A stretch of 63,901 nucleotides of DNA, filler included, from Octopus bimaculoides (Eukaryota), in the NCBI RefSeq assembly GCF_001194135.2. It is 6 parts of 6 records of this genome, joined end to end, with 100 filler letters (N's around TTAATTAATTAA, not from the genome) between each part and the next. Parts side by side here need not be neighbours in the genome. Positions count along the whole stretch, not along the records: positions 55,745 to 62,344 come from NC_069007.1; 5 more parts are not named here. One strand, given 5' to 3'. Both the position numbers and the translations under genes were made by a program. This document shows positions 55,331 through 62,277 of this stretch, piece after piece (the first letter of the stretch is position 1; each line of letters opens with the position of its first letter). The notes beneath the pieces are model-generated. The model was not told where the DNA came from, searched no databases, and saw only the letters and a program-made list of their open reading frames with translations.

Positions 55331-56174
55331 AAGTAAAGGAAATAAAAGAAAAAGAATAAGAAAAGTAGAGAGAGGTGGGAAAATAGATAGAGGTAGAGAG
55401 AGTGAAATGCTTGGCATTCCTATAAGTATCTAACGAAAGTTAGATACTTCGTTCAGCTTGCTAAACGCACACATAAAACAGCATGCATATCTCCCTAAAT
55501 AGAAACATACATAGAAATACACACACATATATAGACACGCATACAAATATACATATATACAAATATATTACAAATTAAAAGGGTAAAGGTTTATCATTTC
55601 TGAACTTCGGTATATGGTGAAGCAAATATTTGCTGATCCCTTAANNNNNNNNNNNNNNNNNNNNNNNNNNNNNNNNNNNNNNNNNNNNTTAATTAATTAA
55701 NNNNNNNNNNNNNNNNNNNNNNNNNNNNNNNNNNNNNNNNNNNNGGGAGTGAGCTTATGTGCAACGCAAACATTTACTCTTTTACTCTTTTACTTGTTTC
55801 AGTCATTTGGCTGCAGCCATGCTGGAGCACCGCCTTTAGTCGAGGAAATTGACCCCAGGACTTATTCTTTGGAAGCCTAGTACTTATTCTATCGGTCTCT
55901 TTTTGCCGAACCGCTAAGTTACGGGGACGTAAACACACCAGCATCTGTTGTCGAACGATGGTGGGAGGACAAACACAGACACACAAACACGCATACATAT
56001 ATATATATATACATATATACGACGGGCTTCTTTCAGTTTCCGTCTACCAAATCCACTCACAAGGTTTTGGTTGGCCTGAGGCTATAGTAGAAGACACTTG
56101 CCCAAAGTGCCACACAGAGGGACTGAAGCCGGAACCATGTGGTTGGTAAGCAAGCTACTTACCACACAGCCACT

Positions 56175-56428
56175 ATTTGATCACTAATCACTATAAACAG
56201 ATAATCTGTTTGGTTGTTCAGCAAGAAATTGCAGAACACTTATAACGTCATCTAACAACAGGAGAATCCATGGTGTGCCCACACACACACACACACACAC
56301 ACTCTCTTCCTTGCTGCCAATATATATATGTGTGTGTCATGGATTATCCTGTTGTTACAGAACATTATGAGTGTTCTGCAACTTCTTGCTGAACAACCAA
56401 ACATATGATTTGTTTGTAGTGATCAAAT
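56175..56428. repeat. Inverted repeat with about 95-bp arms
   Basis: 56175-56272 pairs with 56338-56428 (GTTTGGTTGTTCAGCAAGAA / TTCTTGCTGAACAACCAAAC). The arms are tails of a SINE family also seen at about 58125-58400. Confidence 0.88.
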
Positions 56429-57104
56429 GTTTGCCTTGCAAATAAAGCTCACTCCCTCCATCAAATTGACATTACCTGTACAGGTGCATGACGTGCCACA
56501 TGTCAGGTGATGACATGATAGCAGAGCAATGTGAAATGTAGTATTTTGCTCAGGACCACCATACAACATCCAGTCCAGGAATCAAAACCACAATTATGAG
56601 TGCAACACCCAAACCATTAAGCCATGTGCCTTCACATATACTCTTTACTCTTTTACTTGTTTCAACCATTTGACTGTGGCCATGCTGGAGCACCGCCTTT
56701 AGTCGAGCAAATCGACCCCATGACTTATTCTTTGTAAGCCTAGTACTTATTCTATCGGTCCGTTTTGCTGAACCGCTAAGTTACGAGGATGTAAACACAC
56801 CACCATCGGTTGTCAAGCGATGTTGGGGGGACAAACACAGACACACAAACATATGCACACACATACATATATATACATGCATATATACGACGGGCTTCTT
56901 TCAGTTTCCATCTACCAAATCCACTCACAAGGCTATAGTAGAAGACACTTGCCCAAGGTGCCATGCAGTGGGACTGAACCCGGAACCATGTGGTTCATAA
57001 GCAAACTACTTACCNNNNNNNNNNNNNNNNNNNNNNNNNNNNNNNNNNNNNNNNNNNNNNNNNNNNNNNNNNNNNNNNNNNNNNNNNNNNNNNNNNNNNN
57101 NNNN

Positions 57105-57143
<39 letters not shown>

Positions 57144-57725
57144 TTTCTTAAGAAAAAAGACAGATTGCCAGATGACTTGACCAACCCAAGTAACACTTCT
57201 TTTCATCAATAAAAAATCATGTGTGAAACAGCTGTAGTGAACCATAATCCAACTGTTACTATTTTTTATTCTTCACCTATAAGGTGGCCAGCTAGCAGAA
57301 TTGTTAGCTCACTGGACAAAATGCTTAGTGGTATTTCACCCATTGCTATGTTCTGAGTTCAAATTCTGCTGAGGTCGACTGTCTTTCAGCATTTTGGGGT
57401 CGATAAAATAAATACCGGTGGAAGACTGGGATCAATGTAATTGACTCATCCCCTCCCCCAAAATAGTTGCCCTTGTGGCAACATTTGAAACCATTATTTA
57501 CGTTTCACCTAACTCAGAACCTCTTAATTCATTTGCATCTGGAGTCTGTAGAGGGTGGTGCAATAAGTGCAGTGAGTGTACCCATGTGTGACCTTGATGA
57601 CTTGTGTATTCAGTCAGGTACTTGTGAATGCATGCATGACTGCAGAACAAATCCATGTATTTCACTAAAATTATTGTATGTTTACAAGAGCTTGACAGGC
57701 ATCTTCGACTAACAGGTTATGCTAC

Positions 57726-57768
57726 TCCAGACTGATGACGAGCAAAGACTCAGAAACATGTCTCTGGA
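57726..57768 (+). ncRNA. Minimal type I hammerhead ribozyme candidate
   Basis: TCCAGA-CTGATGA-cGAGcaaagaCTCa-GAAAC-AT-GTC-TCTGGA. Perfect 6-bp helix I, full catalytic core, palindromic ACATGT helix III, GUC cleavage triplet at 57760-57762. Confidence 0.75.
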
Positions 57769-58407
57769 TGCAGGCTTAGCTGGGTGGAGGTGCTTGTCTC
57801 CCCCTTGTAAACATAAGGACACAGGAAATGTGTCAAGGCCGACAGGAGGCAGTGCAGCTTCCTAGGTCTAACCAACAGTAGTATTATTCCCTTCAGGGGA
57901 CTGTCACATTAAGTTGACAGCATACAACTACTTCATCATATCACTACTGTATAAATCTCTCTCAGAGATTTGGAAATGTATTATTTTTAAATCCATGTTT
58001 ACTTTTGTGAATATGTACTTGTTGTAATACATTGTTTGTACCATCATACTATCACCAACCCTCTTTTAGTGCCTTCACTATTCAAATACCTGGTTTTCTT
58101 GAAGCCTGGAAGTTTTATATTGGCTCAGTGGTTTGGGTGTTTGCACTTATGATTGCAAGATCAAGGTTTTGATTCCCAGACCGAGTGTTGTGTTGTGTTC
58201 TTGAGCAAAGTACTTCATTTCATGTTGCTCTGCGATCATTTCAACATCAGACATACAGCATCTAGTTGCACCTGTACAGGTAATGTCGATTTGATGCAGG
58301 GACTGAACTTATGTCTACACAAACATTTGATCACCATAAACAAATCATCTGGTTGCTAAGTAAGAAATTGTCAAACCCTCATATGTTGTCTAACAATAGG
58401 AAAGTTC

Positions 58408-58442
<35 letters not shown>

Positions 58443-59503
58443 AACACATGGTTCTGGGTTCAGTCCCACTGTGTGGCGCTTTGGGCAAGTATTCTTCTAC
58501 TATAGCCTTGAGCTGGCCAAAGCCTAGTGNNNNNNNNNNNNNNNNNNNNNNNNNNNNNNNNNNNNNNNNNNNNNNNNNNNNNNNNNNNNNNNNNNNNNNN
58601 NNNNNNNNNNNNNNNNNNNNNNNNNNNNNNNNNNNNNNNNNNNNNNNNNNNNNNNNNNNNNNNNNNNNNNNNNNNNNNNNNNNNNNNNNNNNNNNNNNNN
58701 NNNNNNNNNNNNNNNNNNNNNNNNNNNNNNNNNNNNNNNNNNNNNNNNNNNNNNNNNNNNNNNNNNNNNNNNNNNNNNNNNNNNNNNNNNNNNNNNNNNN
58801 NNNNNNNNNNNNNNNNNNNNNNNNNNNNNNNNNNNNNNNNNNNNNNNNNNNNNNNNNNNNNNNNNNNNNNNNNNNNNNNNNNNNNNNNNNNNNNNNNNNN
58901 NNNNNNNNNNNNNNNNNNNNNNNNNNNNNNNNNNNNNNNNNNNNNNNNNNNNNNNNNNNNNNNNNNATAAGCACTAGGCTTACAAAGAATAAGTCCTGGG
59001 GGTCGATTTGTTCAACTAAATGTGGTGCTCCAGCATGGCCGCATTCAAATGACTGAAACAAGCAAAAGAATAAAAGAATATATATTCTTTTATTCTTTTA
59101 CTCTTTTATTTGTTTCAGTCATTTTACTACAACCATGCTGGAGCACCACCTTGCGGGGTTTTAGTTGAACAAGCTGGCCCCAAGTTATTTTACTGAACCG
59201 CTAAGTTATGGGAACATAAACACACCAACACCAGTTGTGAAGCAGTGATGGTGGGGGGACAAATACAGGCACATAGACATGTGCCTGCACACACACACAC
59301 ATTTACGTGATGGGCTTCTTTCAATTTCTGTCTACCAAATCCACTCACAAAGCTTTGGTCAGCCCGAGGCTACAGCAGAAGACACTTGCCCAATGTGCCA
59401 TATAGTGGGACTGAACTTGGAACCATGTGCTTGAGAAGCAAACTTTTTACCACACAACCTCGTCTATGCTTATATATGTGTATTTTCTTATTTTTTATAT
59501 ATA

Positions 59504-59644
59504 CAGGGTGTCCACAAAGTCTGGGTACATGGGGATTAACACACTTTTAAAACAAAACAGTTTTATTTAATTATAATGTTAATATTTAATTGTTTATGTC
59601 ATGATTTTATTTACTCCATGTACCCAGACTTTGTGGACACCCTG
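59504..59644. mobile_element. Tc1/mariner-type MITE (141 bp) with perfect 29-bp TIRs and TA TSD
   Basis: TA CAGGGTGTCCACAAAGTCTGGGTACATGG ... CCATGTACCCAGACTTTGTGGACACCCTG TA. Confidence 0.93.
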
Positions 59645-59675
59645 TATATATTTTTCTTATTTTTCATAAACCCAG

Positions 59676-60064
59676 GTGATTGGGCCACAGCAAAAGAACT
59701 GGAAGAATTCTATGGTGATGTGGAAGCAGTGGAGTTTATCGTTGGTGTGCTCTGTGCTCGCAGAGCTCCTCATGCCATGTTCAACCTGATGGTACAAGAG
59801 GCCGGCGCACTGCTCTCCTTACAGAGCCTCCAGTCCAGTCTCTTGTACATGAAGGCCAGAGGACTGTTAGACAACTACGGCAGTATCATTGTCAACAATA
59901 TAGTGAGTATGGCCAGTTACGAAAACTTGATCTGCAGCAACATCAAACAGCCGTGTCCGTCAGTCACTCTGTTTGTCCCTTGGTGGGATCACTATTACGA
60001 AGAGTCTTTTAATTTGGCTGAATGGGATGCTGAAGAAAAAGGCTGCGAGTTGAGCGAATTCTGA
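59676..60064 (+). CDS. PTGS-like: Cyclooxygenase / prostaglandin-endoperoxide synthase-like terminal exon (divergent)
   Basis: Pyrimidine tract plus cAG, phase 1 start. GDWATAKELEEFYGDVEAVEF..F.....E.GA..SL..L...LICSNIK.PCP.....VP aligns by eye to the vertebrate COX last exon (GEKEMSAELEALYGDIDAVE...GAPFSLKGL...LICNNVKGCP). Open for 129 codons and ends LSEF-stop. Confidence 0.8.
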
Positions 60065-60134
60065 AATGTCTTGTTCATCACTGTTTCATATACGCGTGTG
60101 TATGTATGTATACATATGAGTTTGTGTGTGTGTG

Positions 60135-60199
<65 letters not shown>

Positions 60200-60477
60200 G
60201 TATATATATATAAGTATGTACACATATATGTATGTATGCATATTTGGTAAAATAGGAAAATAGAATTCTCCAGACAATTGTTTTTTAATAGGCTCACATT
60301 TTTTAATAGGCTCAGGTAATGTATGGTAAGAAGCTTGCTTCTCAACCACATGGATCTGGGTTCAGTCCCACTGCATGGTACCTTCGGTAAGTGTCTTCTA
60401 CTGTAGGCTCAAGCCGACCAAAGCCTTGTGAGTGAATTTAGTAGATGAAAACTGAGAGAAGCCCATTGTATATATAT

Positions 60478-61545
60478 CATCATCATCATCATCATCGGTT
60501 AACGTCCGCCTTCCATGCTTGCATGGGTTGGACGATTTGACTGAGGAGTGGTGAACCAGATGGCTGCACCAGGCTCCAATCTGATCTGGCAGAGTTTCTA
60601 CAGCTGGATGCCCTTCCTAATGCCAACCAATCCNNNNNNNNNNNNNNNNNNNNNNNNNNNNNNNNNNNNNNNNNNNNNNNNNNNNNNNNNNNNNNNNNNN
60701 NNNNNNNNNNNNNNNNNNNNNNNNNNNNNNNNNNNNNNNNNNNNNNNNNNNNNNNNNNNNNNNNNNNNNNNNNNNNNNNNNNNNNNNNNNNNNNNNNNNN
60801 NNNNNNNNNNNNNNNNNNNNNNNNNNNNNNNNNNNNNNNNNNNNNNNNNNNNNNNNNNNNNNNNNNNNNNNNNNNNNNNNNNNNNNNNNNNNNNNNNNNN
60901 NNNNNNNNNNNNNNNNNNNNNNNNNNNNNNNNNNNNNNNNNNNNNNNNNNNNNNNNNNNNNNNNNNNNNNNNNNNNNNNNNNNNNNNNNNNNNNNNNNNN
61001 NNNNNNNNNNNNNNNNNNNNNNNNNNNNNNNNNNNNNNNNNNNNNNNNNNNNNNNNNNNNNNNNNNNNNNNNNNNNNNNNNNNNNNNNNNNNNNNNNNNN
61101 NNNNNNNNNNNNNNNNNNNNNNNNNNNNNNNNNNNNNNNNNNNNNNNNNNNNNNNNNNNNNNNNNNNNNNNNNNNNNNNNNNNNNNNNNNNNNNNNNNNN
61201 NNNNNNNNNNNNNNNNNNNNNNNNNNNNNNNNNNNNNNNNNNNNCCTCACCACCTCATCCCAGGTCTTCCTGGGCCTACCTCCTCCACAGGTACCCTCAA
61301 CTTCTAGGCTGTGGCACTTTTTCACACAGCTATCCTCATCTATTCTCGCCACATGTCCATACCAATGCAATCGTCTCTCTTGCACACCACAACTGATGCT
61401 TCTTAGGTCCAACTTTTCTCTCAAGGTACTTACACTCTGTCTAGTATGCACACTGACATTACACATCCATCGGAGCATACTGGCTTCATTCCTTGCGAGC
61501 TTACGCATGTCCTCAGCAGTCACAGCCCATGTTTCACTGCCTTGT
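60478..61545 (-). mobile_element. RTE LINE 3' fragment with (GAT)n tail
   Basis: ETWAVTAEDMRKLARNEASMLRWMC...RRLHWYGHVAR...GRPRKTWDEVV is the RTE C-terminus; interrupted by an N gap. Confidence 0.88.
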
Positions 61546-62277
61546 CCCTCCACCATTGCTTGACAACTGATGCTGGTGTGTTTATGTCCCCATAAGTTAG
61601 TTGTTCAGCAAAAAGAGACCGATAGAATATGTACTAGGCTTACAAAGAATAANNNNNNNNNNTATATACGACGGGCTTCTTTCAGTTCCCATCTACCAAA
61701 TCCACTCACAAGTTTTGGGTTGGCCCAAGACTATAGTAGAAAAGACCAAGGTGCTACACAGTGGGACTGAACCCAGGACTATGTGGTTGGGAAGCAAGCA
61801 TCTTACTACAATGCCACACCTGCACCTATACACACACAGACACACACACACACACACATACAGTAGTAATAGGGATTCAAAGAATCAGACAAATCTTACA
61901 TTAAGCTCTCCTCAAAGTGCATGGCTATCAAGAATCGTAGTGATTATAATATGGTGGTCACAATTGAATGACTGTTGGTCAGGGCTGACTAGTTTCAAAC
62001 AACAACTTCATCCAAAATATAAAATTCATAAAGGTTCACATACACAAAACATAGGCTATACAATCAAAAACTCATACACACACAGCTATATATATATACA
62101 GATATAGGGCAGAGAATCGTCAATTAGTAATAAAATTAATAATTAACAATTTTGCCAAGTAGTTCAGTATGAAAAAACACTAGCCGATAAATTTGTAAGT
62201 GCCTGCCTCACGTGGTCTTGATGTCGCATGGTCAAAATTCACATGAGTTTATTAGACACTTTTGAATTTATTAGAAT

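Follow-up and report, generated by a model that had tools for sequence, protein, structure and literature searches.

A 63,901-nucleotide stretch of Octopus bimaculoides DNA (hereafter the window; NCBI RefSeq assembly GCF_001194135.2) was analysed, with the focus on an open exon at positions 59676-60064, which lies in the 6.6-kb piece taken from NC_069007.1 (55,745 to 62,344). This exon is the last of the ten coding exons of a complete gene found in at least three Octopus species, and this gene stands in tandem with its paralogue, the octopus cyclooxygenase (COX; PTGS) gene. The former is called the divergent gene below, and the latter the canonical gene. The exon 10 peptide was 100% identical to the last 129 residues of the O. 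bimaculoides protein XP_014768111.1 (593 amino acids), so that the exon encodes residues 465-593 and the stop codon. Neither Pfam, searched with the exon 10 peptide alone, nor a word-indexed protein search with the same exon gave any match, the identical annotated protein included. An exhaustive search of cluster representatives retrieved a 591-residue protein with 95% identity over all 128 residues and the same end point, which is XP_036370478.1, prostaglandin G/H synthase 1-like, of Octopus sinensis. The same protein cluster held XP_014768111.1, the isoform XP_052833197.1 (550 amino acids) and a partial O. vulgaris model. The divergent gene is modelled in RefSeq (O. bimaculoides and O. sinensis) and GenBank (O. 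vulgaris), and RefSeq, UniProt and EukProt already list it under automated COX names.

The whole piece, with its N gaps, matched O. bimaculoides chromosome CM046627.1 at 100% identity (65131-71730 of locus L001), and exon 10 occupies 69062-69450 of that locus. L001 includes 21 kb of N, and the corresponding O. sinensis locus is gap-free. The gene was rebuilt from genomic DNA of both species. It has 10 coding exons over ~66-70 kb, all introns are GT-AG, and the annotated proteins were reproduced exactly in both. The initial annotation had taken the exon for the intact, though strongly diverged, last exon of a COX paralogue in cephalopods, and the full gene rebuilt in two species bears this out. 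It had also called the exon an orphan, which it is not: the nearest other exon, exon 9, lies 8.0 kb upstream and outside the piece, and exon 10 looked orphan because the piece has just 3.9 kb of upstream sequence. Three-frame translation of 55745-59677 compared with the PDB gave no COX exon upstream within the piece.

The canonical gene (XP_014768109.1, 612 amino acids; QHX41555.1 in O. vulgaris; prostaglandin G/H synthase 2) lies on the same chromosome and the same strand as the divergent gene. Its range ends ~16 kb upstream of the divergent gene in O. bimaculoides; the distance in O. sinensis is ~19 kb, with the same order. Both Octopus species thus carry the canonical and divergent genes in head-to-tail tandem (CM046627.1 13.00-13.13 Mb, loci L001 and L009; CM016886.1 3.67-3.82 Mb, loci L002 and L010), and in O. 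vulgaris the accessions of the two proteins are near neighbours. The RefSeq accession XP_014768110.1 sits between the accessions of the two tandem genes' proteins. The two genes share the ten-exon layout and the intron phases (1,1,1,1,0,0,1,0,1); exons 2, 6, 7, 8 and 9 are of equal length, and exon 4 of the divergent gene is 15 nt shorter than its canonical counterpart. Domain order, cysteines and heme histidines are also common to both proteins, as is a W..YEES motif that follows the catalytic core, with an identity of ~37% overall and 34% in exon 10. Unlike the divergent protein, the canonical one has Tyr385, Gln203, Gly533, Tyr504, WKPSTFGG, a full 120-129 loop and a C-terminal -NEL.

Exon 10 is a phase-1 exon. 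It opens with GT, the last two bases of a split Gly codon (G/GT; the slash marks the splice junction), and its frame is open from 59678 to the stop codon, giving 129 codons with the split Gly counted. This is the longest N-free open frame within the 6.6-kb piece, and both the open 129-codon exon and the good acceptor of the initial annotation were confirmed. The last intron falls inside the Gly483 codon (ACA G/GT GAT) in phase 1, and O. sinensis has the same acceptor context ahead of its exon 10. That the exon starts at the same Gly and in the same phase as the last exon of vertebrate PTGS also held. Direct reading of a vertebrate COX-2-type genomic contig gave ttttatag/GA GAA AAA at the equivalent Gly. 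In vertebrate COX-2- and COX-1-type terminal-exon genomic open reading frames (ORFs), homology began from the same Gly with xCA or xTA codons before it, as expected where a phase-1 (C/T)AG acceptor is read through.

The family of the protein was examined with the exon and with the full protein. When the exon 10 peptide was compared with the PDB by phmmer, COX-1 and COX-2 chains were the only matches at E < 0.1 (1.7e-10 to 8e-6). The next matches were noise (phosphodiesterases at E > 0.2), and no other heme peroxidase was among them. The full protein matched human COX-2 over residues 31-566 with an E value of 7e-111, and Pfam An_peroxidase PF03098 with an E value of 9e-34 (117 bits; the gathering cut-off is 25). 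The 593-residue protein keeps the COX order of domains, from signal peptide through EGF-like module and membrane-binding helices to the catalytic domain, and has all ten cysteines (Cys36, 37, 41, 47, 57, 59, 69, 159, 569 and 575) of the five conserved disulfides. For the O. sinensis orthologue, AlphaFold gave a model (mean pLDDT, predicted local distance difference test, 75; pTM, predicted template modelling score, 0.76) with helices predicted where the membrane-binding domain belongs. It superposed on COX-1/2 with template modelling (TM) scores of 0.83-0.90; the scores to peroxidases and alpha-dioxygenase did not exceed 0.57 (by query length) or 0.64 (by target length). This gap to other heme peroxidases, together with the COX-2 match, indicates that the protein is a COX by descent and does not belong to another peroxidase family. 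The fold and the position and phase of the last intron are those of vertebrate COX-1/COX-2 (PTGS1/PTGS2; PDB 1DIY, 5F19).

Residues were compared in an alignment of 18 sequences, in which the 16 other COX sequences served as reference; ovine COX-1 numbering is used (rat COX-1 numbering minus 2). The HMMER alignment to ovine COX-1 was ungapped over the channel helix, so that an exon position p is converted to COX-1 numbering as p+482. F518, E524, G526, A527, S530 (59816-59818), L531 and L534 are kept in this helix, and Gln523 (59795-59797), Leu528, Leu529 and Ser533 (59825-59827) are changed. The initial annotation had placed all of the kept residues, as well as Gln523, Leu528, Ser533 and the missing WKPSTFGG, in the same way. 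The substrate gate Arg120/Tyr355/Glu524, Ser530, the distal heme histidine His207 and the proximal His388 are all present, as in vertebrate COX-1/COX-2, and Tyr348, Phe381, Trp387 and Gly526 are kept as well.

In contrast to these vertebrate enzymes, the divergent protein has no Tyr385, and it lacks several invariant channel and heme-pocket residues, the STEL-type end and the sequons for N-glycosylation at 68, 144 and 410 (with Asn144Asp and Asn410Gln among the changes). Position 385 is Leu, whereas it is Tyr in 16/16 aligned COX sequences and in 26/26 further fragments (42 in total). Both O. bimaculoides and O. sinensis use TTA for Leu385, against TAC in the canonical gene, and the O. vulgaris model has the same Leu385 peptide. 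No alternative Tyr-encoding exon 8 was found in either locus, the gap-free O. sinensis locus included. Among the four residues that the initial annotation had singled out for inspection, His207, His388 and Arg120 are thus present and Tyr385 is not. Each of the sites of Q203D, F205L, F210L, V349I, I377M and G533S is invariant in the 16 other COX sequences, and the sites of Y504I and N144D agree in 15 of the 16. Tyr504 is an alternative radical site in COX, and Gly533 and the apex of the channel place arachidonate beneath Tyr385. The heme and peroxidase site has both histidines, Asp in place of Gln203, and Leu in place of Phe205 and Phe210.

Two further segments are remodelled. In the alignment, the shorter exon 4 deprives the 120-129 loop of six residues (LIPSPP) right after Arg120. 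RefSeq isoform X2 (550 amino acids) omits exon 4 (129 nt; L001 17920-18048) with the frame kept, and thereby loses Arg120, the shortened 120s loop as a whole, and Cys159, the disulfide partner of Cys37. In the segment 535-552, GLLDNYGS (59861-59884) stands where COX has WKPSTFGG (545-552). W545, P547, T549, F550 and G552 are invariant in 16/16 other COX sequences, and the divergent protein has W545G, P547L, T549N, F550Y and G552S. The segment spans the positions of Ser541 and Ala543, and AlphaFold confidence over it was low (pLDDT ~55). The last four residues are LSEF, with no KDEL-like (S/P)TEL signal for retrieval. A C-terminal E/D-L is found in 14 of the 15 other full-length COX proteins (alignment A1) and the cuttlefish orthologue described below ends in PSF or PPF, so the likeness of LSEF to an endoplasmic reticulum retention signal, proposed in the initial annotation, is a loose resemblance only.

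Selection on the gene was estimated by the Nei-Gojobori method between O. bimaculoides and O. sinensis. For the whole divergent gene, the synonymous and non-synonymous distances were dS 0.157 and dN 0.020, giving dN/dS 0.125 (53 synonymous and 27 non-synonymous differences; neutrality rejected, binomial p 5e-18). For exon 10, dS was 0.272, dN 0.020 and dN/dS 0.073 (18 synonymous and 6 non-synonymous differences; binomial p 1.5e-8). The canonical gene gave dS 0.093, dN 0.017 and dN/dS 0.183, and the constraint on the two genes did not differ (Fisher p 0.38). Neutral evolution, which the initial annotation had named as an outcome that would speak against its reading, is not what was found. The non-neutral dN/dS indicates that the divergent gene is not a pseudogene.

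A counterpart of the divergent exon was found in cuttlefish. Logan genomic contigs (P0002, P0035 and P0036) contained a divergent terminal exon with the acceptor ag/GT GAT TGG as in octopus. In a neighbour-joining tree the cuttlefish and octopus divergent exons clustered at 100% bootstrap, with the caveat of long-branch attraction, and the canonical cephalopod clade was separate (95% bootstrap). Sample ERR14857105 and its sister runs contained a canonical terminal exon too, in a 90%-identity cluster with Acanthosepion pharaonis PTGS2. These findings indicate a sepiid-like decapodiform carrier with both copies, and a duplication older than the octopod-decapodiform split. Between octopus and cuttlefish, exon identity was 41% for the divergent copy, of which the terminal exon alone is known in cuttlefish, and 71% for the canonical copy. 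A profile search with exons 7-9 found no divergent exon 8 in cuttlefish: 85 of 85 matches were nearer to canonical COX, and all 26 that covered the motif have Tyr. The sepiid exon shares GDWA.AKELEE, F518-N-L and the acidic tail VPWW..YEESF..AE..AEE...F with octopus. However, it keeps WRPSTFGG and has Ala530, Ala533 and Leu523 against Ser, Ser and Gln in octopus, indicating that the channel is not conserved within the divergent lineage. The tail (L003 487-579 in cuttlefish) matched at 16 of 30 positions and is kept better than the rest of the exon, the channel part included, whereas the tail of canonical COX is variable. The acidic tail may hold a conserved function of the divergent lineage.

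To our knowledge, every characterised COX-type fatty-acid oxygenase relies on a Tyr385 radical. The loss of Tyr385, Tyr504 and Gly533 would leave the protein unable to act as a cyclooxygenase through the mechanism known so far. In that mechanism the 13-pro-S hydrogen of arachidonate is abstracted by Tyr385; Y385F/Y385F COX-2 is without cyclooxygenase activity, and G533A abolishes cyclooxygenase but not peroxidase activity (PMC12756642). We consider it probable that the exon is the last exon of a divergent COX gene and, jointly, that the product of this gene has lost cyclooxygenase chemistry. Judged from its residues, the protein is very unlikely to be a functioning cyclooxygenase. The initial annotation had offered two inferences, and the "non-catalytic" part of its partner-subunit proposal fits the full protein better, with Tyr385Leu, Tyr504Ile and Gly533Ser, than altered fatty-acid or product specificity, which presumes the working radical site that Tyr385Leu removes.

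For the role that remains, COX dimers offer a precedent. They operate as an allosteric/catalytic pair, in which Arg120 of the allosteric subunit binds effector fatty acids and non-steroidal anti-inflammatory drugs (NSAIDs), and a Y385F/native COX-2 heterodimer retains >90% of Vmax (PMC12756642). A regulatory or partner role is preferred here because the residues needed by an allosteric-type subunit are kept and the gene adjoins a catalytic one. The divergent protein would bind heme and fatty acid without oxygenating the latter, and would regulate or partner the adjacent canonical COX, as the equivalent in nature of the allosteric subunit engineered by Y385F. Purifying selection would then maintain it for a role other than oxygenation. 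Taken alone, the step to a non-oxygenating subunit that pairs with canonical COX is a tentative one, which we would put at somewhat below even. The wider picture is more doubtful still: a coleoid cyclooxygenase-dead paralogue, kept since before the octopod-cuttlefish split, that forms a two-gene COX heterodimer as its separate allosteric subunit, where vertebrate COX has only a conformational heterodimer. The interface of such a heterodimer would be co-evolved and would involve the shortened 120-129 loop, the replaced 535-552 segment and the conserved acidic tail.

Among the closest known systems are the Y385F/native and G533A/native COX-2 heterodimers engineered in the Smith and Malkowski laboratories, in which a non-oxygenating subunit gives near-full activity with a native partner (PMC12756642). 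The octopus protein naturally joins the missing Tyr385, the altered residue 533 and the kept Arg120 of these constructs. However, the engineered heterodimers are point mutants of a homodimer, whereas in octopus the subunit is a separate, diverged gene product with a remodelled interface and a putative pairing.

Several observations weigh against the preferred reading. Transcript support consists only of the RefSeq models and the exon-4-skipping isoform. In mammalian COX-2 the 120-129 loop serves cross-talk, with Pro126/127 opposite Ala543/Ser541 of the partner subunit (PMC12756642), and both cross-talk segments, the loop and 535-552, are the remodelled ones. COX-like dimerisation may thus have been lost altogether, and the remodelled segments could represent either a co-evolved interface or a lost one. 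The difference between Ser530/Ser533/Gln523 in octopus and Ala/Ala/Leu in cuttlefish argues against a conserved fatty-acid site. In addition, Gln203Asp may weaken peroxidase chemistry, and another tyrosine, such as the kept Tyr348, is a possible substitute radical site.

Other explanations were weighed against a partner subunit. Ranked second, and unlikely in our estimate, is a stand-alone heme enzyme that acts as a peroxidase only or handles lipid hydroperoxides. His388, His207 and an intact COX fold are in its favour, and mutations of the G533A type that kill cyclooxygenase activity spare peroxidase activity (PMC12756642). On the other hand, Gln203Asp, Phe205Leu and Phe210Leu lie near the heme at sites invariant in 16/16 other COX sequences, and a pure peroxidase role leaves the kept Arg120, Tyr355 and Glu524 without explanation. 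An active oxygenase of fatty acids whose specificity for substrate or product has changed, in which Gln523, Ser533, Leu528/529 and Ile349 of the channel would tune the fatty acid, is much less probable. Val349Ile and changes at residue 533 shift stereochemistry or chain-length preference in other COX, and PDB entry titles list V349I and G533V COX variants. Also in favour of such an enzyme are the strong purifying selection and the kept Arg120/Tyr355/Glu524, Ser530, Tyr348, Trp387 and both heme histidines. Nevertheless, Leu at 385 and Ile at 504 stand against it, all 42 other COX inspected having Tyr385, and the channel residues differ between octopus and cuttlefish. Y385F homodimers are moreover inactive as cyclooxygenase, and G533A alone abolishes the activity (PMC12756642).

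That the exon is the leftover open frame of a decaying or unexpressed duplicate is highly improbable. The identity to every other COX is just ~34-37%, the N-glycosylation sites have been lost, and no Logan transcript-derived member was present in the cluster of the divergent protein, all of which speak for a pseudogene. This explanation was rejected at the sequence level by ten open exons, each bounded by canonical splice sites, in two independent assemblies, by the dN/dS of 0.125, and by the persistence of the lineage in octopods and a cuttlefish. The least probable explanation, to which we give almost no weight, is that the unusual residues stem from faulty assembly or annotation of one draft genome. 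The O. bimaculoides draft is indeed rich in gaps, but the gap-free O. sinensis locus has the same exon structure and the Leu385 codon TTA, and the O. vulgaris model holds the same peptide. Errors were rejected since the three species agree.

A non-oxygenating COX paralogue does not appear to have been described. Cephalopod and vertebrate COX have been aligned for NSAID-contact residues, and the catalytic tyrosine (numbered Y387) was called conserved (PMC9953149); that alignment presumably used the canonical octopus copy. Our literature search turned up no report of a COX paralogue lacking Tyr385, although an earlier one may exist. The low-identity COX homologues of Havird et al. 2015 (J Mol Evol 80:193) are reportedly insect genes. 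The novelty lies in the whole gene, which is probably a naturally cyclooxygenase-dead, and selectively maintained, COX paralogue, and the exon itself is ordinary. That Tyr385 was lost while the gene stayed as constrained as its working neighbour suggests that the COX scaffold serves a function other than oxygenation, the candidates being a regulatory subunit, a peroxidase and a lipid binder. The gene would offer a natural test case for the allosteric/catalytic subunit model, which until now has been based on engineered mutants. In cephalopod pharmacology, inference of NSAID targets from sequence alone may pick up a protein with no part in making prostaglandin, and the automated name "prostaglandin G/H synthase 1" would then mislead.

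Table 1. Coordinates, in the window, of exon 10 of the divergent COX gene and of the features within and beside it.
Feature	Position	Strand	Basis or remark
Last-intron acceptor, pyrimidine-rich tract and AG (59674-59675), tatatatttttcttatttttcataaacccag	59647-59675	+	Direct reading
Terminal coding exon (10/10) of the divergent COX paralogue	59676-60064	+	Translation is the C-terminus of protein P0033
Channel helix codons, equivalent to ovine 518-534	59780-59830	+	Ungapped HMMER alignment and residue table
Replaced segment, residues 535-552, QSSLLYMKARGLLDNYGS instead of LGNPICSPEYWKPSTFGG	59831-59884	+	Alignments
Disulfide pair Cys569 (59933-59935) and Cys575 (59954-59956)	59933-59956	+	One extra residue between
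C-terminal tail, FVPWWDHYYEESFNLAEWDAEEKGCELSEF	59972-60061	+	Specific to the divergent lineage
TGA stop codon	60062-60064	+	Direct reading of the sequence

The sequence around exon 10 is rich in repeats. An element of ~142 bp resembling a miniature inverted-repeat transposable element occupies 59505-59646 and ends 30 nt upstream of the exon 10 acceptor. Its terminal inverted repeats are perfect over 29 nt (CAGGGTGTCCACAAAGTCTGGGTACATGG and the reverse complement), and its flanks are rich in TA. The element is present in O. bimaculoides and absent at the orthologous O. sinensis site, suggesting a recent insertion near the splice site. Copies of an octopus repeat resembling a short interspersed nuclear element were found at 55770-56163, 56634-57014, 58967-59400, 60330-60475 and 61560-61800. 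The first two are 85% alike, the copies have a core in common (...CTTTTACTTGTTTCAGTCATTTGACTG.GGCCATGCTGGAGCACCGCC...), and they occupy most of the intron and of the downstream sequence. On the minus strand, an ORF broken by an N gap (60492-61556), whose N-terminal half contains ...RLHWYGHVARIDE...GRPRKTWDEVV, gave no match in Pfam and looks like the C-terminal tail of ORF2 of a retrotransposon without long terminal repeats. No AATAAA or ATTAAA was found between exon 10 and the N gap at 60634. The presumed 3′ untranslated region holds, from ~40 nt past the stop codon, a (TG)n/(TA)n microsatellite (60100-60240), and a (CAT)6 run lies further downstream at 60478-60497.

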